NCBI RefSeq assembly: GCF_964204645.1
Contig: NC_134033.1
Location: 11,726,655-11,790,654, forward strand
Origin: Tubulanus polymorphus
Lineage: Eukaryota; Animalia; Nemertea
DNA: 64,000 bases
Direction of reading: 5' to 3'
The notes under the pieces are model-generated. The model was not told the DNA's origin, ran no database searches, and saw only the letters and a list, made by a program, of their open reading frames with translations. Positions 13,061 through 64,000 of this stretch are shown here, in pieces. How positions within the stretch are numbered: the stretch's first letter is position 1; each line of letters starts with the position of its first letter. The translations under genes were made by a program, and so were the position numbers.

Positions 13061-13342
13061 GCAGCCGAATTACTCCTTTTCTATAAATGTATCTTTGAGC
13101 AGGGAACTATTCCACGCTATACTGGACTTGGACCCGCAATGGTATGTCCATTCGCATTAGGTTTTTACCTTTGAGGTATATCATTTGAATGATATCTGAA
13201 CATGTACATGCATAATAAGATCATTGATTATTCATATCCATAGATTTTGGGCAGATTGTTTTGATTTGTCCCTAGGACTTGGTTTTATTGATGTGGAAAC
13301 AAAATAGTCCCTTGGAACATTCTGACATTTATCAGTTATAAC

Positions 13343-15151: not shown

Positions 15152-20963
<5,812 letters not shown>

Positions 20964-25863: not shown

Positions 25864-26102
25864 ATTCAGACCGGATTGTACCGTGCGATCTATACGACCT
25901 TTGACTATCAGCCGTTGAACAACCCCTTTTAAGTCCATCGTGCTGACCACCAGATGCTCGATATGACAGACCCACTACAAGCCTTTAATCTCCCTATCAT
26001 AAATCGGTGCAACAGTGATCCCGATATCTTAATCACATATAATCGTCCGCATTAAATACCGTTCAGAGATAATAACATGTTCGAAAATCAGTGCATTGAC
26101 AA

Positions 26103-37100: not shown

Positions 37101-40100
37101 TATTCGAGGTTAAAAACTTACCCTCACACGACTTTGCGGTGGACAGCGACTTCGTCGAGTTCGTTGACGATTTCCCGCCGAAGACCTTTGGGGCCACCTT
37201 GCCCAGGTCACAATTCGAGTCTTGAAAAAAAAGAGATGAACAAACTATGAAAATTCTGTGTCGGTTTGAGGAGCATAAACGTGCTATTGATGTTGACATA
37301 CAAAGGAATAACGGGAACGCACACCTTGAACAAACTGAATGATGAATCTCGACATGAATAGGGTGATGTCCGTTATTTTCAGGTGGTGGTAGAATACTGA
37401 AGAAATTATCTGTTTGTAGAAAACCGTTTCGACAGTCGAGAACGCGATCATATACACGCGCGCTATACGTGACAATCTGTTCATTTCGGCCGCTGCCGAG
37501 TCCTGTGCCTCCGAAGCACCAGAACCGATAACTAAAACTATCTAGAAAGAATAGATCATTATTCAAGATTAATGTCGGACCATTTCACATCTGGGCTCTG
37601 TGTTCGACTTATCATTTTCGAATCCTCGCAGAGTCAAATTTTAGGCGAGAACCATAGAACTATTCATACTTGTTTAGAAGACGGCTTTGTACCAACGGAG
37701 AAGACCTTCGTTCGGATAGTATGGATTACAGAACCGATATTTGGTGGTTCCTGGCGACTCCGGACGACTTTTATAACGTTCAAGGCTTCGTCTTCATTCT
37801 GAAATCCAACGACAATATCAACATATTTCACAAATCGTTATCGTGTATGTTAACGTCGATACATCCATCTTGACATGAATAGGATCGCCGACATTACTTA
37901 CTGCTATATCTTTATTTACAGTTAGTGCCTTATCCGAGAATGTCACTAAAGTCAGACGGACCATCTTAGGACCAACGTCTAGTTTTTGCACAACCCTTGA
38001 AGCTAGGTCCTTAGCATTTTCGAGGATAGTCCAGGAAACTTCTTTCGATACGTCAATGACTATGACAACGTGCAACTTCATCGACACTACAATGGATTTA
38101 TGCACATCTATCGTTTTATTAAATCATTAAGAAGAGAAAAGAAGTTCTATCCAATTAATGAATATTTTACCGATGCATCCTTGTTTTGGGCTAAGTTTGA
38201 GGAGGCTGCTACAAGGACAGGCGAATGATCCTGGTAGGTTTTTACACGTCCCTCCGCGGTGGCATGGGTTACTGCCAAGACATTCGTCAATATCTATTTT
38301 AAGAGTGAAAGTATACCAGTTTATAATTGTGTTGTCTTTAGGTCTTTTAAACGATTTAGTATTTTCGACAATAGGCCTATACATTAACATTTCTGTGTTC
38401 AAATTCAAAGATAGAGCATATCGGCCAAAGCGAGTGCCAAAGGCAGTAATTAAAAGTGGATTTTGGAGTTCTTTTCAAAGAATTTACAAAATTATATCTC
38501 TAGACATGGTATATCTCGGTACTTTCAAAATTCTCAAACGTTCACAAACGATGAAATTGGTAACTCAGCACTTCACTCACCGTGACAAGATGAAGAAGTA
38601 CTGGTTCCATTCTTTTTCGCCATGGAGTAACCAAATTTCTTGCATTTATACGTATCTGAAAAAAGTCAAAATGTTAAAGAAGCATGGTTCGTGATCATGG
38701 GGTACCGGTATTTGCCCTGGGTACAGTTTCCTCGCTTACCAGTGAAAATACGTTTGAAGATCGTTACTGACTTTCTAATCCAGACGTCGGTCTGAAGAGA
38801 TGAACTTGATATGACGTTTAGGATCGGTAACCATTTTATAAGGATGTTTGCTTCGGATGCGATGGAGACAGTGTACATGCGAACCTAACACATTAACGAT
38901 TTAAAAAGAAAGTTGAATAAAGAGCTTGATAATGAACAATTGATGAAAGGCAAACACAGTTCCTAGTTTTGGGGCAACTTACTAAATCCCGTTGGGGAAA
39001 ATTCACATAGATTTCAGGCATGAATTCATACAAGCAAGCACGCGCTACCTTCGCAAATACATCGCGCTTGGTTCATTATTATATCCCAACTTGAAGAAAT
39101 CATTCACTAACCTTCATATCATACAATTTTTTAAGTTCATCCATCACTCGTATTCTGTCATTATCGATACCTGCTCCTATGTAGAGCAGAACCTTTTTGG
39201 CTTTGACTCGATGGCCGCCTGATGTCAGTGCAATTCTAGCACTTTTTACGCAGGCCTGGAGGGACCTATTCGATGGCTTTTTGTTCAAACTTTCCTCAAC
39301 TTTCGATTCAGCGCAACTGTAGTCGTTGCAGTCTTTTAATTTGTTGGCAATGACTGGTGGAGACTGGCACAGAATCGTAGTTTCCCTAAAGGATTCGGCT
39401 TTGAATGGCAGGGCGGCGACAATTACGCCAAACACTTTGAGAATGATCTTAAATCCGTTTTCTTCACTCATAGATTGAAGCTTAACAGTGCTGTCAAGAA
39501 TGATTGCCATATCAACGGCACCACTAAGGCGAACTAGAATTATAGAGGTAAATATTGTAACATAACGGATCGTTATAAAACCGCCTCTTCATTAGCTGTG
39601 CACATAACTATTAAGCCCCATACATACCTTTTGGGAACGTTACGTTGTCTGGAAGACTTATATTTGGCTGGATAGTGATCCTACTTGTATTCCCAACAGT
39701 GACTCTTAGTGAAATAGTGGTTTGTTCACCAATGTTTTCAGCGACCTCGTGAATTATCCCTTGAGGTGTAGTATTATTATCAGGTGATACGATTGATGTA
39801 CTTGATGATGGTTCAATGCACTGGGTAGTTTTAATGTCCCAGGTAGCCCTTACATTTTGACACTTACAGGATGAGATCTGCATATCATACAAGGCCGTAG
39901 ACGGACAAGGCTGACACTTGTTCATAAGATCGATAAAGTTTGGGGCGTTACAGACACATTTGTGATTCTTCAAGCTGAAACCATTCTTACAGATACACTG
40001 CCCACCAACAGAACTAGAGTATTTTGGGCAGATGCATTTACCATACTCGTCTAAGACCATATTGCCGGAACATGAAGACGGAACACATGACGTAATCTTC

Positions 40101-43100
40101 GGGTTATACATTTCTCCATTTGGACAAGATGTACAAGTGCCATTCTTGGTGTATTTGGGAGGAACGCATTCGCAAACACGCTTGAAACTATTCATCTCAT
40201 AGCCATCATTGCATTTGCACAGCATTGTTTCTGGGTCTTCGACCGAATGGCAGGGGCAGACACATTCACCTTTTTTCAACTGCTTGTTTCCTAAGCAAAT
40301 GCATTTCTTAAGAGATGAAATATATATCGCACCAGCGGGGCATTTCATTACACATTGGTTGTCAACTGCGAACTGGCCAGGAGGACAGATGATGATTGGT
40401 GAGGTTTGGGTTATCTTCTTTGTCGTTGTAGATATCTGATGTATATCCTCCGGTACACACTTCCCAGTATTTAAATCAAATATTTTTCCAGGTGGGCATG
40501 TAATAGATGGTGATTCAGTTGTTGAAAAAGATTCCGGCGTTTTGCATTTATTAGATACTGGATCAAATATTTGCTCAGGCTTACACATTACTGCAGCCAT
40601 ATCCGTTGTCCCAGAAGATGGGGATATGCTTGTTGGTCCCGGATGAACAGTTGTTACGGTTCTTGAATGCGTTGTTTGTATACTTAGTTGACAGGTTTCA
40701 GTTGATGTGTTGAATGTTTGTCCAGGAGGACAGGTAACACCTACCGGTGTAGTCGCCATAGTTTTACACGTATTCGATACAGGATCGAGTGTTTCTCCGG
40801 GTTTACATGTTACAACAGAAGAGGGTCCACTAGTTGTCGTTATTTGTTTGCACGTGTTTGTTGCACTGTCCCAAACTGATTTTCCATCGACACATTTGCA
40901 CATTTTTGTAGAACTATCGGACTGAGAACCCGTAACGCACGGAACGCATTTCTTTTGTGAATTGATATATTTAGGCGCCTTACAACTACACTTCTCTTTT
41001 TCAAGAATGAATCCATTTGAACAAACGCAAGCACCTCCATTCGGCATCGAACCGCTAGGGCAAACACATTTACCAGTTCCATCTCGGAACTTGCCACCCT
41101 TACAAGGATTCGGCTTACACGAGTGGCTGGCTTGGTCATATTGCTGACCTTTAGGGCATGTTTTACATCGTCCATTCTGTAGGTATTTCGGCTGATCACA
41201 TTTGCAAACCTTATCAACGGCGTTCATTTCAAAACCATTCTGACACTTGCAATCCGCGGATGCAGGATCGTATTTGGAATTTTGTGGACATTCGCACTTG
41301 TTATTTTTCTCGACCATTACACTAGAACATTCACACTTCGTTTTCAGTGAGTTGAAAACCATCTTCTGGTCCTTACATACGCATTCATTGTTTTTCGCAA
41401 CCATACCCGCTGGACATGGTTCTTTCGTTGGTCCTGAAGTTGGGGCTATACTCGTCGGTCCAGGGTGACCGGTTGTTGCAGATTCTGGAGGAGTGGTTTG
41501 TGTGCTCGATTGACAGGTCTCAGTCGCTGTGTTGAATGTTTGTCCAGGAGGACAGGTAACACCTACCGGTGTAGTCGCCATAGTTTTACACGTATTCGAT
41601 ACAGGATCGAGTGTTTCTCCGGGTTTACATGTTACAACAGAAGAGGGTCCACTAGTTGTCGTTATTTGTTTGCACGTGTTTGTTGCACTGTCCCAAACTG
41701 ATTTTCCATCGACACATTTGCACATTTTTGTAGATTTATCGAATTGAGAACCCGTAACGCACGCAACGCATTTCTTCTGTAAATTGATATATTTAGGCGC
41801 CTTACAGCTACATTTCTCATTTTCAAGAATGAATCCATTTGAGCAAATGCAAGCACCTCCTCTCGGCATCGAACCGCTAGGGCAAACACATTTACCAGTT
41901 CCATCTCGGAACTTGCCACCCTTACAAGGATTCGGCTTACACGAGTGGCTGGCTTGGTCATATTGCTGACCTTTAGGGCATGTTTTACATTGTCCATTCT
42001 GAAGGTATTTCGGCTGATCACATTTGCAAACCTTATCAACGGCGTTCATTTGGAAACCATTCTGACACTTGCAATCCGCGGATGCAGGATCGTATTTGGA
42101 ATTTTGTGGACATTCGCACTTGTTATTTTTCTCGACCATTACACTAGAACATTCACACTTCGTTTTCAGTGAGTTGAAAACCATCTTCTGGTCCTTACAT
42201 ACGCATTCATTGTTTTTCGCAACCATACCCGCTGGACATGGTTCTTTCGTTGGTCCTGAAGTTGGGGCTATACTCGTCGGTTCTGGATGATCGGTTGTTG
42301 CAGATTCTGTATGAGTGATTTGTGTACTCGGTTGACAGGTCTCAGTCGCTGTGTTGAATGTTTGTCCAGGAGGACAGGTAACACCTACCGGTGTAGTCGC
42401 CATAGTTTTACACGTATTCGATACAGGATCGAGTGTTTCTCCGGGTTTACATGTTACAACAGAAGAGGGTCCACTAGTTGTCGTTATTTGTTTGCACGTG
42501 TTTGTTGCACTGTCCCAAACTGATTTTCCATCGACACATTTGCACATTTTTGTAGAACTATCGAACTGAGAACCCGTAACGCACGGAACGCATTTCTTTT
42601 GTGAATTGATATATTTAGGCGCCTTACAACTACACTTCTCTTTTTCAAGAATGAATCCATTTGAACAAACGCAAGCACCTCCTCTCGGCATCGAACCGCT
42701 AGGGCAAACACATTTACCAGTTCCATCTCGGAACTTGCCACCCTTACAAGGATTCGGCTTACACGAGTGGCTGGCTTGGTCATATTGCTGACCTTTAGGG
42801 CATGTTTTACATTGTCCATTCTGAAGGTATTTCGGCTGATCACATTTGCAAACTTTATCAACGGCGTTCATTTGGAAACCATTCTGACACTTGCAATCCG
42901 CGGATGCAGGATCGTATTTAGAATTCTTTGGACATTCGCATTTACTATTTTTCTCGACCATTACACCAGAACATTCACACTTCTTTTTCAGCGAGTTAAA
43001 AACCATCTTCTGGTCCTTACACGCGCATTCATTGTTTTTCGCAACCATACCTGCTGGACATGGTTCTTTCGTTGGTCCTGAAGTTGGGGCTATACTCGTC

Positions 43101-46100
43101 GGTCCAGGGTGACCGGTTGTTGCAGATTCTGGAGGAGTGGTTTGTGTGCTCGATTGACAGGTCTCAGTCGCTGTGTTGAATGTTTGTCCAGGAGGACAGG
43201 TAACACCTACCGGTGTAGTCGCCATAGTTTTACACGTATTCGATACAGGATCGAGTGTTTCTCCGGGTTTACATGTTACAACAGAAGAGGGTCCACTAGT
43301 TGTCGTTATTTGTTTGCACGTGTTTGTTGCACTGTCCCAAACTGATTTTCCATCGACACATTTGCACATTTTTGTAGATTTATCGAATTGAGAACCCGTA
43401 ACGCACGCAACGCATTTCTTCTGTAAATTGATATATTTAGGCGCCTTACAGCTACATTTCTCATTTTCAAGAATGAATCCATTTGAGCAAATGCAAGCAC
43501 CTCCTCTCGGCATCGAACCGCTAGGGCAAACACATTTACCAGTTCCATCTCGGAACTTGCCACCCTTACAAGGATTCGGCTTACACGAGTGGCTGGCTTG
43601 GTCATATTGCTGACCTTTAGGGCATGTTTTACATTGTCCATTCTGAAGGTATTTCGGCTGATCACATTTGCAAACCTTATCAACGGCGTTCATTTGGAAA
43701 CCATTCTGACACTTGCAATCCGCGGATGCAGGATCGTATTTGGAATTTTGTGGACATTCGCACTTGTTATTTTTCTCGACCATTACACTAGAACATTCAC
43801 ACTTCGTTTTCAGTGAGTTGAAAACCATCTTCTGGTCCTTACATACGCATTCATTGTTTTTCGCAACCATACCCGCTGGACATGGTTCTTTCGTTGGTCC
43901 TGAAGTTGGGGCTATACTCGTCGGTTCTGGATGATCGGTTGTTGCAGATTCTGTATGAGTGATTTGTGTACTCGGTTGACAGGTCTCAGTCGCTGTGTTG
44001 AATGTTTGTCCAGGAGGACAGGTAACACCTACCGGTGTAGTCGCCATAGTTTTACACGTATTCGATACAGGATCGAGTGTTTCTCCGGGTTTACATGTTA
44101 CAACAGAAGAGGGTCCACTAGTTGTCGTTATTTGTTTGCACGTGTTTGTTGCACTGTCCCAAACTGATTTTCCATCGACACATTTGCACATTTTTGTAGA
44201 ACTATCGAACTGAGAACCCGTAACGCACGGAACGCATTTATTTTGTGAATTGATATATTTAGGCGCCTTACAACTACACTTCTCTTTTTCAAGAATGAAT
44301 CCATTTGAACAAACGCAAGCACCTCCTCTCGGCATCGAACCGCTAGGGCAAACACATTTACCAGTTCCATCTCGGAACTTGCCACCCTTACAAGGATTCG
44401 GCTTACACGAGTGGCTGGCTTGGTCATATTGCTGACCTTTAGGGCATGTTTTACATTGTCCATTCTGAAGGTATTTCGGCTGATCACATTTGCAAACCTT
44501 ATCAACGGCGTTCATTTGGAAACCATTCTGACACTTGCAATCCGCGGATGCAGGATCGTATTTGGAATTTTGTGGACATTCGCACTTGTTATTTTTCTCG
44601 ACCATTACACTAGAACATTCACACTTCGTTTTCAGTGAGTTGAAAACCATCTTCTGGTCCTTACATACGCATTCATTGTTTTTCGCAACCATACCCGCTG
44701 GACATGGTTCTTTCGTTGGTCCTGAAGTTGGGGCTATACTCGTCGGTTCTGGATGATCGGTTGTTGCAGATTCTGTATGAGTGATTTGTGTACTCGGTTG
44801 ACAGGTCTCAGTCGCTGTGTTGAATGTTTGTCCAGGAGGACAGGTAACACCTACCGGTGTAGTCGCCATAGTTTTACACGTATTCGATACAGGATCGAGT
44901 GTTTCTCCGGGTTTACATGTTACACCAGAAGAGGGTCCACTAGTTGTCGTTATTTGTTTGCACGTGTTTGTTGCACTGTCCCAAACTGATTTTCCATCGA
45001 CACATTTGCACATTTTTGTAGAACTATCGAACTGAGAACCCGTAACGCACGGAACGCATTTCTTTTGTGAATTGATATATTTAGGCGCCTTACAGCTACA
45101 TTTCTCATTTTCAAGAATGAATCCATTTGAGCAAATGCAAGCACCTCCTCTCGGCATCGAACCGCTAGGGCAAACACATTTACCAGTTCCATCTCGGAAC
45201 TTGCCACCCTTACAAGGATTCGGCTTACACGAGTGGCTGGCTTGGTCATATTGCTGACCTTTAGGGCATGTTTTACATTGTCCATTCTGAAGGTATTTCG
45301 GCTGATCACATTTGCAAACTTTATCAACGGCGTTCATTTGGAAACCATTCTGACACTTGCAATCCGCGGATGCTGGATCGTATTTAGAATTCTTTGGACA
45401 TTCGCATTTACTATTTTTCTCGACCATTACACCAGAACATTCACACTTCTTTTTCAGCGAGTTAAAAACCATCTTCTGGTCCTTACACGCGCATTCATTG
45501 TTTTTCGCAACCATACCTGCTGGACATGGTTCTTTCGTTGGTCCTGAAGTTGGGGCTATACTCGTCGGTCCAGGGTGACCGGTTGTTGCAGATTCTGGAG
45601 GAGTGGTTTGTGTGCTCGATTGACAGGTCTCAGTCGCTGTGTTGAATGTTTGTCCAGGAGGACAGGTAACACCTACCGGTGTAGTCGCCATAGTTTTACA
45701 CGTATTCGATACAGGATCGAGTGTTTCTCCGGGTTTACATGTTACAACAGAAGAGGGTCCACTAGTTGTCGTTATTTGTTTGCACGTGTTTGTTGCACTG
45801 TCCCAAACTGATTTTCCATCGACACATTTGCACATTTTTGTAGAACTATCGAACTGAGAACCCGTAACGCACGCAACGCATTTCTTCTGTAAATTGATAT
45901 ATTTAGGCGCCTTACAGCTACATTTCTCATTTTCAAGAATGAATCCATTTGAGCAAATGCAAGCACCTCCTCTCGGCATCGAACCGCTAGGGCAAACACA
46001 TTTACCAGTTCCATCTCGGAACTTGCCACCCTTACAAGGATTCGGCTTACACGAGTGGCTGGCTTGGTCATATTGCTGACCTTTAGGGCATGTTTTACAT

Positions 46101-49100
46101 TGTCCATTCTGAAGGTATTTCGGCTGATCACATTTGCAAACCCTATCAACGGCGTTCATTTCAAAACCATTCTGACACTTGCAATCCGCGGATGCAGGAT
46201 CGTATTTGGAATTTTGTGGACATTCGCACTTGTTATTTTTCTCTACCATTACACCCGAACATTCGCATTTCTGATTTTGTGAGTTATAAACCATATTCGA
46301 GTCTTTACATTCACATTTACCATTTCGTTCAACCATACCCTTTTTACACTTTGCAGTCGTTGTTGTTGCAGGCTGCTTCGTTGTTTCAGTGGTCGGTGCT
46401 GGGCCTGCCGACGTTGTAACTGGTGGACTAGTCGTTGTCTTTTCGGGACTTGGAGGTGACGTTTTTGGTGTGGATTTCGTTGTCATTTGTCCACAAGTAT
46501 TCGTCGCACTATCCCACGTCGCTTTCCCGTCGCATTTACACATTTTTGTCGTTTGGTCAAACGTAGATCCAGAGACACATGATGTGCACTTGTTCGTCTT
46601 TTTATCGACGAACTTAGGTGCTTTACAAACGCAATTTTTACTGACGAGTGTAAAGCTATTTTTGCAATCGCATTTATCCCCATTTTCAGTCGATGCTGAA
46701 GGACAAACACATTTACCACTTTTGTCTCGGAACTTGTCACCTTTACAAGAATTCGGTTTACACGTTTTAGAGGCTTCGTCATATTGCAGTCCATTGGGAC
46801 ACGTTTCACATTTTCCATCCTTAACGTATTTCGGAGGATCACATTTGCAAACTTTATCAACGGCGTTCATTTGGAAACCATTTTCGCACTTACAATCCTT
46901 CGATGGTTCATCGTATTTAGAATTTTGTGGACATTCGCACTTGTTATTTTTCTCTACCATTACACCCGAACATTCGCATTTCTGATTTTGTGAGTTATAA
47001 ACCATCTTCGAGTCTTTACATTCACATTTACCATTTCGTTCAACCATACCCTTTTTACACTTTGCAGTCGTTGTTGTTGCAGGCTGCTTCGTTGTTTCAG
47101 TGGTCGGTGCTGGGCCTGCCGACGTTGTAACTGGTGGACTAGTCGTTGTCTTTTCGGGACTTGGAGGTGACGTTTTTGGTGTGGATTTCGTTGTCATTTG
47201 TCCACAAGTATTCGTCGCACTATCCCACGTCGCTTTGCCGTCGCATTTACACATTTTTGTCGTTTGGTCAAACGTAGATCCAGAGACACATGATGTGCAC
47301 TTGTTCGTCTTTTTATCGACGAACTTAGGTGCTTTACAAACGCAATTTTTACTGACGAGTGTAAAGCCATTTTTGCAATCGCATTTATCCCCATTTTCAG
47401 TCGATGCTGAAGGACAAACACATTTACCACTTTTGTCTCGGAACTTGTCACCTTTACAAGAATTCGGTTTACACGTTTTAGAGGCTTCGTCATATTGCTG
47501 TCCATTGGGACACGTTTCACATTTTCCATCCTTAACGTATTTCGGAGGATCACATTTGCAAACTTTATCAACGGCGTTCATTTGGAAACCATTTTCGCAC
47601 TTACAATCCTTCGATGGTTCATCGTATTTAGAATTTTGTGGACATTCGCACTTGTTATTTTTCTCTACCATTACACCCGAACATTCGCATTTCTGATTTT
47701 GTGAGTTATAAACCATCTTCGAGTCTTTACATTCACATTTACCATTTCGTTCAACCATACCCTTTTTACACTTTGCAGTCGTTGTTGTTGCAGGCTGCTT
47801 CGTTGTTTCAGTGGTCGGTGCTGGGCCTGCCGACGTTGTAACTGGTGGACTAGTCGTTGTCTTTTCGGGACTTGGAGGTGACGTTTTTGGTGTGGATTTC
47901 GTTGTCATTTGTCCACAAGTATTCGTCGCACTATCCCACGTCGCTTTCCCGTCGCATTTACACATTTTTGTCGTTTGGTCAAACGTAGATCCAGAGACAC
48001 ATGATGTGCACTTGTTCGTCTTTTTATCGACGAACTTAGGTGCTTTACAAACGCAATTTTTACTGACGAGTGTAAAGCTATTTTTGCAATCGCATTTATC
48101 CCCATTTTCAGTCGATGCTGAAGGACAAACACATTTACCACTTTTGTCTCGGAACTTGTCACCTTTACAAGAATTCGGTTTACACGTTTTAGAGGCTTCG
48201 TCATATTGCAGTCCATTGGGACACGTTTCACATTTTCCATCCTTAACGTATTTCGGAGGATCACATTTGCAAACTTTATCAACGGCGTTCATTTGGAAAC
48301 CATTTTCGCACTTACAATCCTTCGATGGTTCATCGTATTTAGAATTTTGTGGACATTCGCACTTGTTATTTTTCTCTACCATTACACCCGAACATTCGCA
48401 TTTCTGATTTTGTGAGTTATAAACCATCTTCGAGTCTTTACATTCACATTTACCATTTCGTTCAACCATACCCTTTTTACACTTTGCAGTCGTTGTTGTT
48501 GCAGGCTGCTTCGTTGTTTCAGTGGTCGGTGCTGGGCCTGCCGACGTTGTAACTGGTGGACTAGTCGTTGTCTTTTCGGGACTTGGAGGTGACGTTTTTG
48601 GTGTGGATTTCGTTGTCATTTGTCCACAAGTATTCGTCGCACTATCCCACGTCGCTTTGCCGTCGCATTTACACATTTTTGTCGTTTGGTCAAACGTAGA
48701 TCCAGAGACACATGATGTGCACTTGTTCGTCTTTTTATCGACGAACTTAGGTGCTTTACAAACGCAATTTTTACTGACGAGTGTAAAGCCATTTTTGCAA
48801 TCGCATTTATCCCCATTTTCAGTCGATGCTGAAGGACAAACACATTTACCACTTTTGTCTCGGAACTTGTCACCTTTACAAGAATTCGGTTTACACGTTT
48901 TAGAGGCTTCGTCATATTGCTGTCCATTGGGACACGTTTCACATTTTCCATCCTTAACGTATTTCGGAGGATCACATTTGCAAACTTTATCAACGGCGTT
49001 CATTTGGAAACCATTTTCGCACTTACAATCCTTCGATGGTTCATCGTATTTAGAATTTTGTGGACATTCGCACTTGTTATTTTTCTCTACCATTACACCC

Positions 49101-52100: not shown

Positions 52101-55100
52101 GTTGTAACTGGTGGACTAGTCGTTGTCTTTTCGGGACTTGGAGGTGACGTTTTTGGTGTGGATTTCGTTGTCATTTGTCCACAAGTATTCGTCGCACTAT
52201 CCCACGTCGCTTTCCCGTCGCATTTACACATTTTTGTCGTTTGGTCAAACGTAGATCCAGAGACACATGATGTGCACTTGTTCGTCTTTTTATCGACGAA
52301 CTTAGGTGCTTTACAAACGCAATTTTTACTGACGAGTGTAAAGCCATTTTTGCAATCGCATTTATCCCCATTTTCAGTCGATGCTGAAGGACAAACACAT
52401 TTACCACTTTTGTCTCGGAACTTGTCACCTTTACAAGAATTCGGTTTACACGTTTTAGAGGCTTCGTCATATTGCTGTCCATTGGGACACGTTTCACATT
52501 TTCCATCCTTAACGTATTTCGGAGGATCACATTTGCAAACTTTATCAACGGCGTTCATTTGGAAACCATTTTCGCACTTACAATCCTTCGATGGTTCATC
52601 GTATTTAGAATTTTGTGGACATTCGCACTTGTTATTTTTCTCTACCATTACACCCGAACATTCGCATTTCTGATTTTGTGAGTTATAAACCATCTTCGAG
52701 TCTTTACATTCACATTTACCATTTCGTTCAACCATACCCTTTTTACACTTTGCAGTCGTTGTTGTTGCAGGCTGCTTCGTTGTTTCAGTGGTCGGTGCTG
52801 GGCCTGCCGACGTTGTAACTGGTGGACTAGTCGTTGTCTTTTCGGGACTTGGAGGTGACGTTTTTGGTGTGGATTTCGTTGTCATTTGTCCACAAGTATT
52901 CGTCGCACTATCCCACGTCGCTTTCCCGTCGCATTTACACATTTTTGTCGTTTGGTCAAACGTAGATCCAGAGACACATGATGTGCACTTGTTCGTCTTT
53001 TTATCGACGAACTTAGGTGCTTTACAAACGCAATTATTACTGACGAGTGTAAAGCCATTTTTGCAATCGCATTTATCCCCATTTTCAGTCGATGCTGAAG
53101 GACAAACACATTTACCACTTTTGTCTCGGAACTTGTCACCTTTACAAGAATTCGGTTTACACGTTTTAGAGGCTTCGTCATATTGCTGTCCATTGGGACA
53201 CGTTTCACATTTTCCATCCTTAACGTATTTCGGAGGATCACATTTGCAAACTTTATCAACGGCGTTCATTTGGAAACCATTTTCGCACTTACAATCCTTC
53301 GATGGTTCATCGTATTTAGAATTTTGTGGACATTCGCACTTGTTATTTTTCTCTGCCATTACACCCGAACATTCGCATTTCTGATTTTGTGAGTTATAAA
53401 CCATCTTCGAGTCTTTACATTCACATTTACCATTTCGTTCAACCATACCCTTTTTACACTTTGCAGTCGTTGTTGTTGCAGGCTGCTTCGTTGTTTCAGT
53501 GGTCGGTGCTGGGCCTGCCGACGTTGTAACTGGTGGACTAGTCGTTGTCTTTTCGGGACTTGGAGGTGACGTTTTTGGTGTGGATTTCGTTGTCATTTGT
53601 CCACAAGTATTCGTCGCACTATCCCACGTCGCTTTCCCGTCGCATTTACACATTTTTGTCGTTTGGTCAAACGTAGATCCAGAGACACATGATGTGCACT
53701 TGTTCGTCTTTTTATCGACGAACTTAGGTGCTTTACAAACGCAATTTTTACTGACGAGTGTAAAGCTATTTTTGCAATCGCATTTATCCCCATTTTCAGT
53801 CGATGCTGAAGGACAAACACATTTACCACTTTTGTCTCGGAACTTGTCACCTTTACAAGAATTCGGTTTACACGTTTTAGAGGCTTCGTCATATTGCAGT
53901 CCATTGGGACACGTTTCACATTTTCCATCCTTAACGTATTTCGGAGGATCACATTTGCAAACTTTATCAACGGCGTTCATTTGGAAACCATTTTCGCACT
54001 TACAATCCTTCGATGGTTCATCGTATTTAGAATTTTGTGGACATTCGCACTTGTTATTTTTCTCTACCATTACACCCGAACATTCGCATTTCTGATTTTG
54101 TGAGTTATAAACCATCTTCGAGTCTTTACATTCACATTTACCATTTCGTTCAACCATACCCTTTTTACACTTTGCAGTCGTTGTTGTTGCAGGCTGCTTC
54201 GTTGTTTCAGTGGTCGGTGCTGGGCCTGCCGACGTTGTAACTGGTGGACTAGTCGTTGTCTTTTCGGGACTTGGAGGTGACGTTTTTGGTGTGGATTTCG
54301 TTGTCATTTGTCCACAAGTATTCGTCGCACTATCCCACGTCGCTTTGCCGTCGCATTTACACATTTTTGTCGTTTGGTCAAACGTAGATCCAGAGACACA
54401 TGATGTGCACTTGTTCGTCTTTTTATCGACGAACTTAGGTGCTTTACAAACGCAATTTTTACTGACGAGTGTAAAGCCATTTTTGCAATCGCATTTATCC
54501 CCATTTTCAGTCGATGCTGAAGGACAAACACATTTACCACTTTTGTCTCGGAACTTGTCACCTTTACAAGAATTCGGTTTACACGTTTTAGAGGCTTCGT
54601 CATATTGCTGTCCATTGGGACACGTTTCACATTTTCCATCCTTAACGTATTTCGGAGGATCACATTTGCAAACTTTATCAACGGCGTTCATTTGGAAACC
54701 ATTTTCGCACTTACAATCCTTCGATGGTTCATCGTATTTAGAATTTTGTGGACATTCGCACTTGTTATTTTTCTCTACCATTACACCCGAACATTCGCAT
54801 TTCTGATTTTGTGAGTTATAAACCATCTTCGAGTCTTTACATTCACATTTACCATTTCGTTCAACCATACCCTTTTTACACTTCGCAGTCGTTGTTGTTG
54901 CAGGCTGCTTCGTTGTTTCAGTGGTCGGTGCTGGGCCTGCCGACGTTGTAACTGGTGGACTAGTCGTTGTCTTTTCGGGACTTGGAGGTGACGTTTTTGG
55001 TGTGGATTTCGTTGTCATTTGTCCACAAGTATTCGTCGCACTATCCCACGTCGCTTTCCCGTCGCATTTACACATTTTTGTCGTTTGGTCAAACGTAGAT

Positions 55101-58100
55101 CCAGAGACACATGATGTGCACTTGTTCGTCTTTTTATCGACGAACTTAGGTGCTTTACAAACGCAATTTTTACTGACGAGTGTAAATCCATTTTTGCAAT
55201 CGCATTTATCCCCATTTTCAGTCGATGCTGAAGGACAAACACATTTACCACTTTTGTCTCGGAACTTGTCACCTTTACAAGAATTCGGTTTACACGTTTT
55301 AGAGGCTTCGTCATATTGCTGTCCATTGGGACACGTTTCACATTTTCCATCCTTAACGTATTTCGGAGGATCACATTTGCAAACTTTATCAACGGCGTTC
55401 ATTTGGAAACCATTTTCGCACTTACAATCCTTCGATGGTTCATCGTATTTAGAATTTTGTGGACATTCGCACTTGTTATTTTTCTCTACCATTACACCCG
55501 AACATTCGCATTTCTGATTTTGTGAGTTATAAACCATCTTCGAGTCTTTACATTCACATTTACCATTTCGTTCAACCATACCCTTTTTACACTTTGCAGT
55601 CGTTGTTGTTGCAGGCTGCTTCGTTGTTTCAGTGGTCGGTGCTGGGCCTGCCGACGTTGTAACTGGTGGACTAGTCGTTGTCTTTTCGGGACTTGGAGGT
55701 GACGTTTTTGGTGTGGATTTCGTTGTCATTTGTCCACAAGTATTCGTCGCACTATCCCACGTCGCTTTCCCGTCGCATTTACACATTTTTGTCGTTTGGT
55801 CAAACGTAGATCCAGAGACACATGATGTGCACTTGTTCGTCTTTTTATCGACGAACTTAGGTGCTTTACAAACGCAATTTTTACTGACGAGTGTAAAGCC
55901 ATTTTTGCAATCGCATTTATCCCCATTTTCAGTCGATGCTGAAGGACAAACACATTTACCACTTTTGTCTCGGAACTTGTCACCTTTACAAGAATTCGGT
56001 TTACACGTTTTAGAGGCTTCGTCATATTGCTGTCCATTGGGACACGTTTCACATTTTCCATCCTTAACGTATTTCGGAGGATCACATTTACAAACTTTAT
56101 CAACGGCGTTCATTTGGAAACCATTTTCGCACTTACAATCCTTCGATGGTTCATCGTATTTAGAATTTTGTGGACATTCGCACTTGTTATTTTTCTCTAC
56201 CATTACACCCGAACATTCGCATTTCTGATTTTGTGAGTTATAAACCATCTTCGAGTCTTTACATTCACACTTACCATTTCGTTCAACCATACCCTTTTTA
56301 CACTTTGCAGTCGTTGTTGTTGCAGGCTGCTTCGTTGTTTCAGTGGTCGGTGCTGGGCCTGCCGACGTTGTAACTGGTGGACTAGTCGTTGTCTCTTCGG
56401 GACTTGGAGGTGACGTTTTTGGTGTGGATTTCGTTGTCATTTGTCCACAAGTATTCGTCGCACTATCCCACGTCGCTTTCCCGTCGCATTTACACATTTT
56501 TGTCGTTTGGTCAAACGTAGATCCAGAGACACATGATGTGCACTTGTTCGTCTTTTTATCGACGAACTTAGGTGCTTTACAAACGCAATTTTTACTGACG
56601 AGTGTAAAGCCATTTTTGCAATCGCATTTATCCCCATTTTCAGTCGATGCTGAAGGACAAACACATTTACCACTTTTGTCTCGGAACTTGTCACCTTTAC
56701 AAGAATTCGGTTTACACGTTTTAGAGGCTTCGTCATATTGCTGTCCATTGGGACACGTTTCACATTTTCCATCCTTAACGTATTTCGGAGGATCACATTT
56801 GCAAACTTTATCAACGGCGTTCATTTGGAAACCATTTTCGCACTTACAATCCTTCGATGGTTCATCGTATTTAGAATTTTGTGGACATTCGCACTTGTTA
56901 TTTTTCTCTACCATTACACCCGAACATTCGCATTTCTGATTTTGTGAGTTATAAACCATCTTCGAGTCTTTACATTCACATTTACCATTTCGTTCAACCA
57001 TACCCTTTTTACACTTTGCAGTCGTTGTTGTTGCAGGCTGCTTCGTTGTTTTAGTGGTCGGTGCTGGGCCTGCCGACGTTGTAACTGGTGGACTAGTCGT
57101 TGTCTTTTCGGGACTTGGAGGTGACGTTTTTGGTGTGGATTTCGTTGTCATTTGTCCACAAGTATTCGTCGCACTATCCCACGTCGCTTTCCCGTCGCAT
57201 TTACACATTTTTGTCGTTTGGTCAAACGTAGATCCAGAGACACATGATGTGCACTTGTTCGTCTTTTTATCGACGAACTTAGGTGCTTTACAAACGCAAT
57301 TATTACTGACGAGTGTAAAGCCATTTTTGCAATCGCATTTATCCCCATTTTCAGTCGATGCTGAAGGACAAACACATTTACCACTTTTGTCTCGGAACTT
57401 GTCACCTTTACAAGAATTCGGTTTACACGTTTTAGAGGCTTCGTCATATTGCTGTCCATTGGGACACGTTTCACATTTTCCATCCTTAACGTATTTCGGA
57501 GGATCACATTTGCAAACTTTATCAACGGCGTTCATTTGGAAACCATTTTCGCACTTACAATCCTTCGATGGTTCATCGTATTTAGAATTTTGTGGACATT
57601 CGCACTTGTTATTTTTCTCTGCCATTACACCCGAACATTCGCATTTCTGATTTTGTGAGTTATAAACCATCTTCGAGTCTTTACATTCACATTTACCATT
57701 TCGTTCAACCATACCCTTTTTACACTTTGCAGTCGTTGTTGTTGCAGGCTGCTTCGTTGTTTCAGTGGTCGGTGCTGGGCCTGCCGACGTTGTAACTGGT
57801 GGACTAGTCGTTGTCTTTTCGGGACTTGGAGGTGACGTTTTTGGTGTGGATTTCGTTGTCATTTGTCCACAAGTATTCGTCGCACTATCCCACGTCGCTT
57901 TCCCGTCGCATTTACACATTTTTGTCGTTTGGTCAAACGTAGATCCAGAGACACATGATGTGCACTTGTTCGTCTTTTTATCGACGAACTTAGGTGCTTT
58001 ACAAACGCAATTTTTACTGACGAGTGTAAAGCCATTTTTGCAATCGCATTTATCCCCATTTTCAGTCGATGCTGAAGGACAAACACATTTACCACTTTTG

Positions 58101-61100
58101 TCTCGGAACTTGTCACCTTTACAAGAATTCGGTTTACACGTTTTAGAGGCTTCGTCATATTGCTGTCCATTGGGACACGTTTCACATTTTCCATCCTTAA
58201 CGTATTTCGGAGGATCACATTTGCAAACTTTATCAACGGCGTTCATTTGGAAACCATTTTCGCACTTACAATCCTTCGATGGTTCATCGTATTTAGAATT
58301 TTGTGGACATTCGCACTTGTTATTTTTCTCTACCATTACACCCGAACATTCGCATTTCTGATTTTGTGAGTTATAAACCATCTTCGAGTCTTTACATTCA
58401 CATTTACCATTTCGTTCAACCATACCCTTTTTACACTTTGCAGTCGTTGTTGTTGCAGGCTGCTTCGTTGTTTCAGTGGTCGGTGCTGGGCCTGCCGACG
58501 TTGTAACTGGTGGACTAGTCGTTGTCTTTTCGGGACTTGGAGGTGACGTTTTTGGTGTGGATTTCGTTGTCATTTGTCCACAAGTATTCGTCGCACTATC
58601 CCACGTCGCTTTCCCGTCGCATTTACACATTTTTGTCGTTTGGTCAAACGTAGATCCAGAGACACATGATGTGCACTTGTTCGTCTTTTTATCGACGAAC
58701 TTAGGTGCTTTACAAACGCAATTATTACTGACGAGTGTAAAGCCATTTTTGCAATCGCATTTATCCCCATTTTCAGTCGATGCTGAAGGACAAACACATT
58801 TACCACTTTTGTCTCGGAACTTGTCACCTTTACAAGAATTCGGTTTACACGTTTTAGAGGCTTCGTCATATTGCTGTCCATTGGGACACGTTTCACATTT
58901 TCCATCCTTAACGTATTTCGGAGGATCACATTTGCAAACTTTATCAACGGCGTTCATTTGGAAACCATTTTCGCACTTACAATCCTTCGATGGTTCATCG
59001 TATTTAGAATTTTGTGGACATTCGCACTTGTTATTTTTCTCTGCCATTACACCCGAACATTCGCATTTCTGATTTTGTGAGTTATAAACCATCTTCGAGT
59101 CTTTACATTCACATTTACCATTTCGTTCAACCATACCCTTTTTACACTTTGCAGTCGTTGTTGTTGCAGGCTGCTTCGTTGTTTCAGTGGTCGGTGCTGG
59201 GCCTGCCGACGTTGTAACTGGTGGACTAGTCGTTGTCTTTTCGGGACTTGGAGGTGACGTTTTTGGTGTGGATTTCGTTGTCATTTGTCCACAAGTATTC
59301 GTCGCACTATCCCACGTCGCTTTGCCGTCGCATTTACACATTTTTGTCGTTTGGTCAAACGTAGATCCAGAGACACATGATGTGCACTTGTTCGTCTTTT
59401 TATCGACGAACTTAGGTGCTTTACAAACGCAATTTTTACTGACGAGTGTAAAGCCATTTTTGCAATCGCATTTATCCCCATTTTCAGTCGATGCTGAAGG
59501 ACAAACACATTTACCACTTTTGTCTCGGAACTTGTCACCTTTACAAGAATTCGGTTTACACGTTTTAGAGGCTTCGTCATATTGCTGTCCATTGGGACAC
59601 GTTTCACATTTTCCATCCTTAACGTATTTCGGAGGATCACATTTGCAAACTTTATCAACGGCGTTCATTTGGAAACCATTTTCGCACTTACAATCCTTCG
59701 ATGGTTCATCGTATTTAGAATTTTGTGGACATTCGCACTTGTTATTTTTCTCTACCATTACACCCGAACATTCGCATTTCTGATTTTGTGAGTTATAAAC
59801 CATCTTCGAGTCTTTACATTCACATTTACCATTTCGTTCAACCATACCCTTTTTACACTTTGCAGTCGTTGTTGTTGCAGGCTGCTTCGTTGTTTCAGTG
59901 GTCGGTGCTGGGCCTGCCGACGTTGTAACTGGTGGACTAGTCGTTGTCTTTTCGGGACTTGGAGGTGACGTTTTTGGTGAGGATTTCGTTGTCATTTGTC
60001 CACAAGTATTCGTCGCACTATCCCACGTCGCTTTCCCGTCGCATTTACACATTTTTGTCGTTTGGTCAAACGTAGATCCAGAGACACATGATGTGCACTT
60101 GTTCGTCTTTTTATCGACGAACTTAGGTGCTTTACAAACGCAATTTTTACTGACGAGTGTAAAGCCATTTTTGCAATCGCATTTATCCCCATTTTCAGTC
60201 GATGCTGAAGGACAAACACATTTACCACTTTTGTCTCGGAACTTGTCACCTTTACAAGAATTCGGTTTACACGTTTTAGAGGCTTCGTCATATTGCTGTC
60301 CATTGGGACACGTTTCACATTTTCCATCCTTAACGTATTTCGGAGGATCACATTTGCAAACTTTATCAACGGCGTTCATTTGGAAACCATTTTCGCACTT
60401 ACAATCCTTCGATGGTTCATCGTATTTAGAATTTTGTGGACATTCGCACTTGTTATTTTTCTCTACCATTACACCCGAACATTCGCATTTCTGATTTTGT
60501 GAGTTATAAACCATCTTCGAGTCTTTACATTCACATTTACCATTTCGTTCAACCATACCCTTTTTACACTTTGCAGTCGTTGTTGTTGCAGGCTGCTTCG
60601 TTGTTTCAGTGGTCGGTGCTGGGCCTGCCGACGTTGTAACTGGTGGACTAGTCGTTGTCTTTTCGGGACTTGGAGGTGACGTTTTTGGTGTGGATTTCGT
60701 TGTCATTTGTCCACAAGTATTCGTCGCACTATCCCACGTCGCTTTGCCGTCGCATTTACACATTTTTGTCGTTTGGTCAAACGTAGATCCAGAGACACAT
60801 GATGTGCACTTGTTCGTCTTTTTATCGACGAACTTAGGTGCTTTACAAACGCAATTTTTACTGACGAGTGTAAAGCCATTTTTGCAATCGCATTTATCCC
60901 CATTTTCAGTCGATGCTGAAGGACAAACACATTTACCACTTTTGTCTCGGAACTTGTCACCTTTACAAGAATTCGGTTTACACGTTTTAGAGGCTTCGTC
61001 ATATTGCTGTCCATTGGGACACGTTTCACATTTTCCATCCTTAACGTATTTCGGAGGATCACATTTGCAAACTTTATCAACGGCGTTCATTTGGAAACCA

Positions 61101-64000
61101 TTTTCGCACTTACAATACTTCGATGGTTCATCGTATTTAGAATTTTGTGGACATTCGCACTTGTTATTTTTCTCTACCATTACACCCGAACATTCGCATT
61201 TCTGATTTTGTGAGTTATAAACCATCTTCGAGTCTTTACATTCACATTTACCATTTCGTTCAACCATACCCTTTTTACACTTTGCAGTCGTTGTTGTTGC
61301 AGGCTGCTTCGTTGTTTCAGTGGTCGGTGCTGGGCCTGCCGACGTTGTAACTGGTGGACTAGTCGTTGTCTTTTCGGGACTTGGAGGTGACGTTTTTGGT
61401 GTGGATTTCGTTGTCATTTGTCCACAAGTATTCGTCGCACTATCCCACGTCGCTTTGCCGTCGCATTTACACATTTTTGTCGTTTGGTCAAACGTAGATC
61501 CAGAGACACATGATGTGCACTTGTTCGTCTTTTTATCGACGAACTTAGGTGCTTTACAAACGCAATTTTTACTGACGAGTGTAAAGCCATTTTTGCAATC
61601 GCATTTATCCCCATTTTCAGTCGATGCTGAAGGACAAACACATTTACCACTTTTGTCTCGGAACTTGTCACCTTTACAAGAATTCGGTTTACACGTTTTA
61701 GAGGCTTCGTCATATTGCTGTCCATTGGGACACGTTTCACATTTTCCATCCTTAACGTATTTCGGAGGATCACATTTGCAAACTTTATCAACGGCGTTCA
61801 TTTGGAAACCATTTTCGCACTTACAATCCTTCGATGGTTCATCGTATTTAGAATTTTGTGGACATTCGCACTTGTTATTTTTCTCTACCATTACACCCGA
61901 ACATTCGCATTTCTGATTTTGTGAGTTATAAACCATCTTCGAGTCTTTACATTCACATTTACCATTTCGTTCAACCATACCCTTTTTACACTTTGCAGTC
62001 GTTGTTGTTGCAGGCTGCTTCGTTGTTTCAGTGGTCGGTGCTGGGCCTGCCGACGTTGTAACTGGTGGACTAGTCGTTGTCTCTTCGGGACTTGGAGGTG
62101 ACGTTTTTGGTGTGGATTTCGTTGTCATTTGTCCACAAGTATTCGTCGCACTATCCCACGTCGCTTTCCCGTCGCATTTACACATTTTTGTCGTTTGGTC
62201 AAACGTAGATCCAGAGACACATGATGTGCACTTGTTCGTCTTTTTATCGACGAACTTAGGTGCTTTACAAACGCAATTATTACTGACGAGTGTAAAGCCA
62301 TTTTTGCAATCGCATTTATCCCCATTTTCAGTCGATGCTGAAGGACAAACACATTTACCACTTTTGTCTCGGAACTTGTCACCTTTACAAGAATTCGGTT
62401 TACACGTTTTAGAGGCTTCGTCATATTGCTGTCCATTGGGACACGTTTCACATTTTCCATCCTTAACGTATTTCGGAGGATCACATTTGCAAACTTTATC
62501 AACGGCGTTCATTTGGAAACCATTTTCGCACTTACAATCCTTCGATGGTTCATCGTATTTAGAATTTTGTGGACATTCGCACTTGTTATTTTTCTCTACC
62601 ATTACACCCGAACATTCGCATTTCTGATTTTGTGAGTTATAAACCATCTTCGAGTCTTTACATTCACATTTACCATTTCGTTCAACCATACCCTTTTTAC
62701 ACTTTGCAGTCGTTGTTGTTGCAGGCTGCTTCGTTGTTTCAGTGGTCGGTGCTGGGCCTGCCGACGTTGTAACTGGTGGACTAGTCGTTGTCTTTTCGGG
62801 ACTTGGAGGTGACGTTTTTGGTGTGGATTTCGTTGTCATTTGTCCACAAGTATTCGTCGCACTATCCCACGTCGCTTTGCCGTCGCATTTACACATTTTT
62901 GTCGTTTGGTCAAACGTAGATCCAGAGACACATGATGTGCACTTGTTCGTCTTTTTATCGACGAACTTAGGTGCTTTACAAACGCAATTTTTACTGACGA
63001 GTGTAAAGCCATTTTTGCAATCGCATTTATCCCCATTTTCAGTCGATGCTGAAGGACAAACACATTTACCACTTTTGTCTCGGAACTTGTCACCTTTACA
63101 AGAATTCGGTTTACACGTTTTAGAGGCTTCGTCATATTGCTGTCCATTGGGACACGTTTCACATTTTCCATCCTTAACGTATTTCGGAGGATCACATTTG
63201 CAAACTTTATCAACGGCGTTCATTTGGAAACCATTTTCGCACTTACAATCCTTCGATGGTTCATCGTATTTAGAATTTTGTGGACATTCGCACTTGTTAT
63301 TTTTCTCTACCATTACACCCGAACATTCGCATTTCTGATTTTGTGAGTTATAAACCATATTAGAGTCTTTACATTCACATTTACCATTTCGTTCAACCAT
63401 ACCCTTTTTACACTTTGCAGTCGTTGTTGTTGCAGGCTGCTTCGTTGTTTCAGTGGTCGGTGCTGGGCCTGCTGACGTTGTAACTGGTGGACTAGTCGTT
63501 GTCTTTTCGGGACTTGGAGGTGACGTTTTTGGTGTGGATTTCGTTGTCATTTGTCCACAAGTATTCGTCGCACTATCCCACGTCGCTTTCCCGTCGCATT
63601 TACACATTTTTGTCGTTTGGTCAAACGTAGATCCAGAGACACATGATGTGCACTTGTTCGTCTTTTTATCGACGAACTTAGGTGCTTTACAAACGCAATT
63701 TTTACTGACGAGTGTAAAGCCATTTTTGCAATCGCATTTATCCCCATTTTCAGTCGATGCTGAAGGACAAACACATTTACCACTTTTGTCTCGGAACTTG
63801 TCACCTTTACAAGAATTCGGTTTACACGTTTTAGAGGCTTCGTCATATTGCTGTCCATTGGGACACGTTTCACATTTTCCATCCTTAACGTATTTCGGAG
63901 GATCACATTTGCAAACTTTATCAACGGCGTTCATTTGGAAACCATTTTCGCACTTACAATACTTCGATGGTTCATCGTATTTAGAATTTTGTGGACATTC
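28166..64000 (-). CDS. Giant secreted Cys/Lys-rich mucin/silk-like protein (5'-partial): repeat mega-exon, then VWA-EGF-VWA-EGF-VWA-PAN-VWD-C8-(CPxG modules)-VWA-(CPxG modules)-Ser/Lys tail
   Basis: Manual GT-AG model with all phases consistent: >64000-39628, 39533-39112, 38884-38740 (VWA1), 38293-38171 (Ca-EGF, DIDEC), 38107-37902, 37798-37670, 37541-37325 (VWA2), 37220-37122, 36831-36712 (Ca-EGF, DVDEC), 36365-36256, 36009-35771, 35646-35453 (VWA3), 35150-35097, 35007-34738 (PAN/apple), 34384-34137, 33987-33816, 33582-33456 (VWD, GLCGNCNG), 33328-33133, 32646-32562 (C8), 32480-32427, 32347-32300, 32055-31948, 31617-31546, 31447-31227, 30959-30755, 30514-30395 (VWA4), 30267-30208, 30088-30041, 29906-29859, 29728-29609, 29463-29416, 29319-29254, 29136-29023, 28680-28166 (TGA). 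About 1,667 aa follow the mega-exon. Confidence 0.88.
34525..34657. mobile_element. Tc1/mariner (pogo/Tigger-like) MITE in an intron
   Basis: TIRs CAGTGGGACCTCGTTATAAC / GTTGTAACGAGGTTCCACTG, with TA on the right flank. Confidence 0.8.
36491..36652. repeat. ~81-bp direct tandem duplication in an intron
   Basis: ccacgtttaggaaaaataaa...ggtaccgagagtaagg occurs twice. Confidence 0.85.
39628..64000 (-). CDS. Mega-exon (>=24,373 bp, >=8,120 codons) of the giant protein
   Basis: Uninterrupted ORF (track 39611..63934) that stays open to the window edge. It ends at donor AAAG|GTATGT (exon end 39628, phase 1), which joins the VWA1 exon in frame. Confidence 0.93.
40630..46200. repeat. Coding tandem array of ~7 x 822-bp units (274 aa, 30 Cys)
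   Basis: Period of 822 bp (40707, 41529, 42351, 43173, 43995, 44817, 45639). Same 13-module core as the 711-bp unit plus two extra two-Cys modules in the linker. Confidence 0.96.
46200..64000. repeat. Coding tandem array of ~25 x 711-bp units (237 aa: 26 Cys, ~38 Lys, ~48-aa PTS linker)
   Basis: Shadow ORFs recur every 711 bp (46389, 47100, 47811 ... 62742). Units differ by only a few SNPs. Confidence 0.97.

Follow-up and report, generated by a model that had tools for sequence, protein, structure and literature searches.

What kind of gene can hold a coding frame that runs for more than 24 kb without a stop? The question is raised by a stretch of the genome of the ribbon worm Tubulanus polymorphus (Nemertea; NCBI RefSeq assembly GCF_964204645.1, contig NC_134033.1, positions 11,726,655 to 11,790,654 of the forward strand). 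The whole stretch of 64,000 nucleotides is referred to here as the window. A sequence-only reading of the window had described on its minus strand a single stop-free exon of at least 24 kb, built from disulfide modules alternating with short mucin-like linkers. The analysis was extended to the next 60 kb of the contig, and positions above 64000 continue the numbering of the window past its end. The exon proves to be larger than first described, 32.5 kb. It is probably the central, phase 1-1 exon of one gene for a very large secreted extracellular structural glycoprotein. By analogy with known systems, the product would most likely be a mucus, tube or glue polymer.

The list of open reading frames (ORFs) of the window includes a minus-strand ORF of 8,107 amino acids (39611..63934), and translation from the window edge shows this frame without a stop up to base 64000. 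The remaining two minus-strand frames of the same part contain 160 and 1,013 stops. In the window and the next 60 kb taken together, the frame extends to 72239, giving 10,875 stop-free codons. More than 8,100 codons without a stop, as claimed earlier, are thus present; the accompanying claim that they contain no intron is deduced from the open frame and not from RNA. With the predicted splice sites, the giant exon spans 72171..39628 (minus strand; 32,544 nt; 10,848 amino acids) and starts 8.2 kb past the window. Its product amounts to 1,162 kDa before glycosylation, with an isoelectric point of 8.9 and a net charge of +647. Lys, Thr and Cys make up 14.9%, 13.6% and 10.0% of the residues, and about 75% of the exon encodes disulfide rod and about 25% proline-, threonine- and serine-rich (PTS) sequence. 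The ORF list also contains 198-amino acid ORFs on the plus strand, one per repeat unit, which are antisense by-products.

Tandem Repeats Finder returns nothing for the array, because the period of 711 nt is above its 500-nt limit. In a script-based periodicity analysis, the translation is 75% identical to itself when shifted by 237 or 474 amino acids. The 237-amino acid unit of 13 C-x(10-13)-C modules and a linker of about 48 residues rich in Thr, Pro and Ser, as originally described, is exact for 29 units, and the peptide that had been singled out for mass spectrometry is present. The description of the exon as rod units and linkers is correct and incomplete. At its 5' start the exon encodes about 110 residues of Cys-rich single hairpin modules. 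They are followed by a Cys-free block of 485 residues with TTPKG-type repeats of Thr, Pro, Gly and Lys (52.6% Thr+Ser+Pro, net charge +73), and then by 38 copies of a 29-residue repeat with exact period, in each of which a single C-x12-C hairpin is set among Thr, Pro and Lys. The rods come after these blocks. There are 37 of them: 29 of A-type, one hybrid, six of B-type with a longer period of 274 residues, and one divergent. The part of the exon inside the window is arranged as follows.

39628..64000, minus strand: in-window portion of the giant exon (open frame and predicted splice sites)
46349..64000, minus strand: A-type array, 29 units of 237 amino acids, with units 1-5 past the window end (period and alignments)
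40850..46348, minus strand: hybrid unit (A start, B remainder), then six B-type units with a 274-amino acid period
39809..40849, minus strand: long linker containing single hairpins, followed by the divergent terminal unit
39629..39808, minus strand: Cys-free exon tail, ending at the predicted donor

The A unit consists of a core of 189 residues with 26 Cys, in which the 13 loops are joined by CxC or CxxC, and a linker of 48 residues that lacks Cys and is 62.5% Thr+Ser+Pro. Two loop types dominate, C-P-x-G-x-x-[YF]-[DN]-x5-C and C-x2-G-x4-N-G-x-C. The B linkers include two additional one-hairpin modules. Over the whole exon, the 37 linkers between rods range from 48 to 169 residues and are about 62% Thr+Ser+Pro. 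The terminal unit is about 44% identical to the A core and retains 24 of the 26 Cys columns. The exon encodes 1,085 Cys and 542 loops. The Cys total is an odd number; therefore at least one Cys would be unpaired if all others pair within loops, and such a Cys could form a disulfide with another molecule.

A codon-aware alignment of the A and B cores shows differences at 64% of the synonymous sites, as against 19% of the non-synonymous ones. These figures correspond to non-synonymous (dN) and synonymous (dS) distances of 0.22 and 1.46 and a dN/dS of 0.15, and all 26 Cys are conserved (26/26). The B units compared pairwise have dN/dS values of 0.17-0.43. Judged from these comparisons, selection at the protein level is visible on the units. 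An open frame kept by chance is excluded because of the A/B dN/dS and the Cys conservation, and on this evidence the region is a genuine protein-coding exon.

Is this exon a gene by itself or part of a larger one? The sequence-only reading had recommended a search of the next window for a signal peptide and N-terminal domains, and both are found there. The first exon, 86032-85577 (minus strand), has a signal-peptide-like start and then a short PTS stretch. This signal-peptide/PTS exon (L004:1577-2032, minus strand) has a sub-threshold match to Drosophila 'New glue' (20.6 bits versus the 31-bit cut-off), which is probably compositional. For Pfam and homology queries, exons were taken singly. 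Past position 64000 on the same strand, Pfam identifies exons for EGF_CA, VWA, PAN, VWD, C8, TIL and VWA, and the order of this upstream cassette is signal peptide/VWA/EGF/VWA/PAN/VWD-C8-TIL/VWA. Between its last VWA and the giant exon lie micro-exons of one hairpin each, with good AG/GT sites and phase 1-1. The donor of the last micro-exon is in phase 1 and fits the acceptor TTCTAG/GG at 72172/72171, from which the giant ORF is read in frame. At the other end, the giant exon has a consensus donor in phase 1, AAAAG/GTATGT at 39628/39627, 15 nt before the TAA. The acceptor TTCTAG/TT at 39534/39533 gives an in-frame, phase-1 entry to an exon that begins with VWA, and a second cassette follows.

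73119-73057, 72747-72703 and 72613-72560, minus strand: examples of one-hairpin micro-exons upstream of the giant exon (splice sites)
39534..39627, minus strand: predicted 94-nt intron, phase 1, AAAAG/GTATGT ... TTCTAG/TT, with the in-frame TAA (39611-39613) inside
39103..39533, minus strand: next exon, divergent VWA without signal peptide, its 3' limit being an ORF bound (paralogues, AlphaFold2, Foldseek)
38130..38474, minus strand: ORF with calcium-binding EGF exon (Pfam EGF_CA 5.9e-08; 42% identity to the EGF of the upstream cassette)
35448..38123, minus strand: ORFs with VWA, second EGF_CA and VWA exons (Pfam, ORF list)
34676..35053, minus strand: PAN/apple exon (PAN_1 2.7e-05; colinear with the upstream PAN exon)
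33094..34463, minus strand: VWD exons and a C8-like exon (Pfam VWD 2e-10; tblastn to the upstream C8 exon 8e-07)
28169..32517, minus strand: one-hairpin micro-exon candidates, VWA exons (31478-30711), more hairpin micro-exons, and a Ser-rich/Lys-rich ORF (28720-28169)

The exon at 39103..39533 has no direct Pfam match, and neither a BLASTP comparison with the first VWA-like exon upstream nor a sequence search of PDB finds anything. It has four paralogues in its own genome (an assembly of 268 Mb in 77 contigs), with E-values of 2e-4 to 7e-3 (contig C2). These four match Pfam VWA at 1e-11 to 5e-16, from profile position 1. The AlphaFold2 model of the exon has a predicted local distance difference test (pLDDT) of 74.5 and a predicted template modelling score (pTM) of 0.74. 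In Foldseek it matches VWA/I-domains with probability 1.0 and template modelling (TM) scores up to 0.73. The metal ion-dependent adhesion site (MIDAS) motif looks degenerate when read from the sequence. By modelled fold and by homology, the exon can be taken as a VWA domain. The downstream and upstream cassettes are colinear, with 30-42% identity.

These data bear on whether one gene or two are present. It is rather unlikely that the giant exon is a last exon ending at the TAA at 39611, with the downstream cassette as a separate paralogous gene or a decaying duplicate. Such an arrangement would account for the in-frame stop 15 nt past the donor, and the two cassettes are tandem paralogues, each trailed by a low-complexity ORF, as tandem duplication would leave. 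However, neither an ATG nor a signal peptide nor a polyadenylation signal occurs in the 78 nt between the TAA and the start of VWA coding, and the VWA fold starts at the exon edge. Both splice sites are strong and agree in phase, the exons further downstream are intact and have Pfam matches, and no polyadenylation signal was found in the 94-nt intron either. The splice sites favour a model in which the giant exon is internal (phase 1-1) to one gene, and the gap between TAA and VWA offers neither room nor a signal peptide for a separate gene start. Note that with phase 1 at both ends, skipping of the giant exon would preserve the frame.

What would the rods look like, and do they have relatives? 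AlphaFold2 models the unit core, from an alignment of 15 rows, with a mean pLDDT of 88.3 and no residue below 50. The model is a rod of about 13 short two-stranded beta-hairpins in series, consistent with the 13 modules of the sequence, and the CxC motif lies on the second strand of most hairpins. The disulfides would pair within each loop. The picture of beads on a string above 1 MDa thus agrees with the data: the exon alone amounts to 1.16 MDa, and rods modelled with a pLDDT of 88 alternate with linkers.

Pfam searches with the A, B and terminal cores (E up to 10) return no family except a sub-threshold cEGF match in the terminal unit. This match is found in the last unit only (16.4 bits versus the 26.6-bit cut-off), and the gathering cut-offs of EGF-like and cEGF (PF00008, PF12662) are not reached. 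In a phmmer search of the A core against 1.84 billion cluster representatives, 52 matches are obtained at E up to 1e-3. The best has an E-value of 8e-18, identities are 29-42%, and none is longer than 1,466 amino acids. The named ones are cysteine-rich surface-type proteins of Hexamita inflata, a hypothetical protein of Elysia crispata with CBM_14, and hypothetical proteins of Myxococcota; the others looked up are unnamed sequences from read-archive or metagenome assemblies. These matches were rejected as orthologues. They have the hairpin motif in common with the array and lack the 13-module unit; the similarity is at motif level. A word-based search among proteins of 4.5-14.2k amino acids found no homologue of the array. 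In its own genome, 37 unit matches are listed among the best 40 candidates, a limit that could hide distant paralogues, and all are inside the giant exon.

Searches by structure give a similar result. Foldseek against PDB finds no match to the unit core at E up to 1e-3; the nearest structures are EGF arrays (Pfs25, E 4.5e-3; NELL2), a Chlamydomonas mastigoneme and 4-1BB. VIA-align against 48,161 chains places the cysteine-rich domain of EphA2 first, with a Z of 3.5, and TNFR1 has a Z of 2.6. A shape search of the ESM Atlas reaches TM scores of at most 0.48, to unnamed, DUF5874-type or EGF-type clusters. Since no specific relative is found, the rod is best described as a general EGF/TNFR-like stack of disulfide hairpins. 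EGF/cEGF, TNFR and ephrin-receptor modules are likewise small CxC disulfide beta-hairpins stacked into rods, but here each module has two Cys, 13 modules form a fixed 189-residue unit, and the matches are not significant. Judged from all these searches, the repeat unit belongs to no named family.

The same searches suggest another role for the rods. Besides serving as struts, they might be multivalent glycan- or chitin-binding surfaces. Each long hairpin would then have a conserved aromatic-Asp/Asn pair, as the core hairpin of peritrophin-A does (CBM_14), and the protein would cross-link polysaccharides or mucin glycans. The motif C-P-x-G-x-x-[YF]-[DN] recurs in 24 different loops of 12 residues, and an aromatic residue is present in 38 of the 53 distinct loops. 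In an ESM feature search, a small cluster that carries DUF5874 and CBM_14 scores 0.92, and the Elysia and Myxococcota matches pair such hairpins with CBM_14. However, the CBM_14 match itself is below threshold (12.4 bits versus the 22.1-bit cut-off, E 0.18) and covers profile positions 28-48 only, which is a single hairpin without the rest of the fold. No profile hidden Markov model (HMM) matches above threshold, DUF5874 (PF19202) has no HMM match to the units, and the shape search gives clusters carrying it a TM score of 0.30. The structural matches are generic EGF, TNFR and Eph cysteine-rich domains with Z of at most 3.5. Glycan binding as the role of the rods is therefore quite unlikely.

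To which kind of known protein does the whole gene belong? Because VWA, EGF_CA, PAN and VWD-C8-TIL flank the giant exon on both sides, the gene falls in the broad VWD-containing mucin/adhesive kind. The earlier statement that its architecture is unrecognised thus holds for the unit, which has no family in Pfam or phmmer, and not for the exon as a stand-alone entity. Matrilins begin VWA-EGF-VWA, and so do the flanking cassettes here. The model of the first downstream exon also resembles the VWA of mussel byssus PTMP1, with TM scores of 0.6-0.73. PTMP1 and matrilins differ in being small and without mucin or rod arrays.

The central region of vertebrate mucins is a single very large exon. In the present gene, as in the gel-forming mucins (MUC2/5AC/5B/6/19), VWD-C8-TIL flanks surround central PTS sequence with Cys-rich interruptions. 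The published layout of gel-forming mucins is (VWD-C8-TIL)x3-PTS-(VWD-C8-TIL), with CysD, VWC and a cystine knot (PMC4948705). Here one VWD/C8/TIL exon set lies between 86032 and the giant exon, where that layout has three. The central PTS is present as the 485-residue block and the 37 linkers and is a minority of the exon. CysD (Mucin2_WxxW) is absent from the Pfam results for the units at E up to 10. On the C-terminal side a VWD and a C8-like exon are present, and no VWC or cystine knot is found among the ORFs scanned. Since the three-unit and CysD criteria fail, the gene is not filed as a gel-forming mucin, and no full-architecture match to this characterised mucin family is obtained. The extra VWA, EGF and PAN domains and the reversed proportion of rod to PTS are further differences. 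The generalisation that gel mucins have Cys-poor PTS exons, made in the sequence-only reading, is partly true; MUC2 and MUC5 carry CysD within PTS (PMC4948705).

The closest parallel in layout, by analogy, is Mlig-ap2 of the flatworm Macrostomum lignano. This protein of 14,794 amino acids has N-terminal VWD and TIL, followed by 21 repeats of 255 and then 25 repeats of 221 amino acids (PMC6410801). It is O-glycosylated, belongs to a cationic adhesive system and is essential for adhesion, as shown by RNA interference (PMC6410801). The comparison with Mlig-ap2 made at the outset was apt: the giant-exon gene also has VWD/TIL ends and two successive arrays of the 220-255-residue type, a likeness in architecture only (PMC6410801). 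No homology to Mlig-ap2 is found among the 52 phmmer matches or the 4.5-14.2k-residue proteins, the presence of Mlig-ap2 in these libraries being unconfirmed. The two also differ in domains, with LDLa and TSP1 in Mlig-ap2 and VWA, EGF_CA, PAN and VWD on both sides here. The repeat here is a 26-Cys hairpin rod, and the function here is predicted from domains and analogy.

Another parallel is found in the Balbiani-ring proteins of Chironomus. They are about 1 MDa in size, have most of their coding sequence in a single exon of some 30 kb or longer, and build the dwelling tube. As in the present gene, a giant exon encodes tandem units in which Cys-rich and Pro-containing blocks alternate. Balbiani-ring units have 60-90 residues and four Cys, a Cys-bearing block alternates with a Pro-rich charged block, and there are no VWD/VWA flanks. 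Kinship with these proteins or with the oocyst wall proteins of Cryptosporidium, of which the exon had seemed reminiscent, receives no support, as no homology was found (for Balbiani-ring proteins, phmmer against the 1.84e9 representatives).

Instead of a secreted mucus or glue polymer, the product might be an apical-matrix or cell-surface tether like Dumpy or SCO-spondin. The giant size, the EGF-like hairpin modules and the PTS stretches would all be compatible with it, and SCO-spondin has VWD domains. However, no ZP, transmembrane, TSP1 or LDLa exon is found among the ORFs scanned in the gene span, whose 3' end is not settled, and a tether is highly unlikely.

How stable is the array? Nucleotide identity between A units is 99.2-100%, and 22 of the 711 sites of the unit vary. 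The variant pattern of units 12-19 is repeated exactly in units 20-27. This corresponds to an exact 5,968-bp duplication with a lag of 5,688 bp (8 units) at window positions 48,500-60,100 (A units 12-27). It is either a very recent segmental duplication within the exon or an assembly over-count, and without the duplicated block the exon is still about 27 kb. The 8-unit duplication and the hybrid A/B unit imply unequal crossing-over and homogenisation. The array would have grown by such crossing-over, and its A units would have been homogenised. Recent events cannot be dated because the A units are nearly identical. For the 3' part there are also short-read DNA contigs. One of them, 4.1 kb long, aligns to 37800-40735 and differs there by 7 substitutions and 7 gap positions, all outside the predicted splice sites, and short-read contigs at the 94-nt intron are identical to the assembly. 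Short-read contigs of the B region are 3-7x as deep as single-copy sequence, in keeping with about seven B-type copies; variants in the short-read contigs are too few, and too confounded by paralogous units, to bear on selection. There is a very small chance that the locus is silent or recently dead or owes its size to an assembly artefact, as the lack of RNA support, two identical 5.7-kb blocks and near-identical A units would allow, but 32.5 kb without a stop or frameshift, purifying selection between unit types, a short-read depth that fits the B copy number and the 27 kb left without the duplicated block speak against it.

Several points weigh against a single gene for a secreted structural polymer. 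All splice sites are deduced from sequence, and function follows from domain logic and analogy only. The locus has no RNA support, and expression of the giant-exon gene is a prediction. Four runs of one study that hold the 3' stretch behave as DNA, with introns covered and no joints. Older small runs under the same species label, one of them presumed to be RNA, contain hardly any of the words of this stretch, which argues slightly against a very high level of expression in these samples. The phmmer and word-based searches found no orthologue that would show conservation between species. The 3' end of the gene is provisional, since the ORF at 28720-28169 may itself end in a donor site. Should the exact 8-unit duplication be an assembly error, there would be fewer A units than counted here.

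If the secreted polymer is nevertheless the right reading, its parts can be assigned roles. The Thr/Pro/Ser linkers would be O-glycosylated and extended and would act as hinges, and the rods would give stiffness, protease resistance and spacing. The VWD-C8-TIL assemblies at both ends would join molecules into multimers through disulfides, in the manner of mucins and von Willebrand factor. The VWA domains may bind other matrix components, and the Lys-rich surface may pair with polyanionic partners or substrata. Together these parts would make a fibre about a micrometre long that can be cross-linked, and it would serve in epidermal mucus, in the tube lining or as an adhesive. A glycosylated PTS residue contributes about 0.25 nm and a rod of the size of the TNFR ectodomain about 11-12 nm, from which a contour length near 1 micrometre is estimated.

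Micro-exons for two-Cys hairpins (45-63 nt, phase 1-1) adjoin the intron-free array of the same module type, at 72560-73119 and at 28832-32517. Their position hints that the giant exon may have originated by intron loss followed by amplification. A more detailed proposal is put forward tentatively, as a possibility short of an even chance. It takes the product as a protein of about 14,000 amino acids with a VWD-C8-TIL cassette at each end, and the 13-hairpin, 26-Cys rod as an undescribed domain-level building block. The rods would be stiff, multivalent struts on glycosylated hinges that bind glycans or polyanions, and this 'rod-and-hinge' mucin design would have arisen in ribbon worms from one-hairpin micro-exons via intron loss and tandem amplification.

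Other features of the region are as follows. At 89.5-93.4 kb (L004:5548-9400, minus strand), ORF translations indicate, as the upstream neighbour, an astacin-type metalloprotease-like gene with two MAM-like domains and TSP1 repeats. A separate downstream gene at 23607-25974 (minus strand) encodes a trypsin-type serine protease domain preceded by a signal peptide and a Thr/Pro-rich stalk. Two more VWD-C8-TIL exon sets are found at 4984-7186 and 16818-19219 (minus strand), and a long (TA)n-type microsatellite at 18661-18954, seen as IYIY... in translation, adjoins a VWD exon. The same ORF of about 95-120 amino acids occurs twice, at 856-1140 and 11268-11639 (minus strand), and looks like an interspersed repeat. 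A GC-rich minisatellite at 12102-13174 (GC 0.447 in the 12-14 kb bin) contains repetitive Cys/Arg-rich ORFs on the plus strand.

The mucus and tubes of ribbon worms are little characterised at the protein level, and published proteomics has centred on toxins. If expressed, the exon described here would be among the largest single coding exons, and its product among the largest secreted proteins, described in animals. The protein would be a natural block copolymer in which rigid disulfide rods alternate with glycosylated hinges, the classical mucin proportion being reversed. With phase 1-1 micro-exon modules beside an intron-free, homogenised array, the locus illustrates a possible origin of such giants. 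The parallel to Mlig-ap2, to which no homology is detected, would suggest that underwater adhesives and gels follow convergent rules, and it could guide biomimetic materials.

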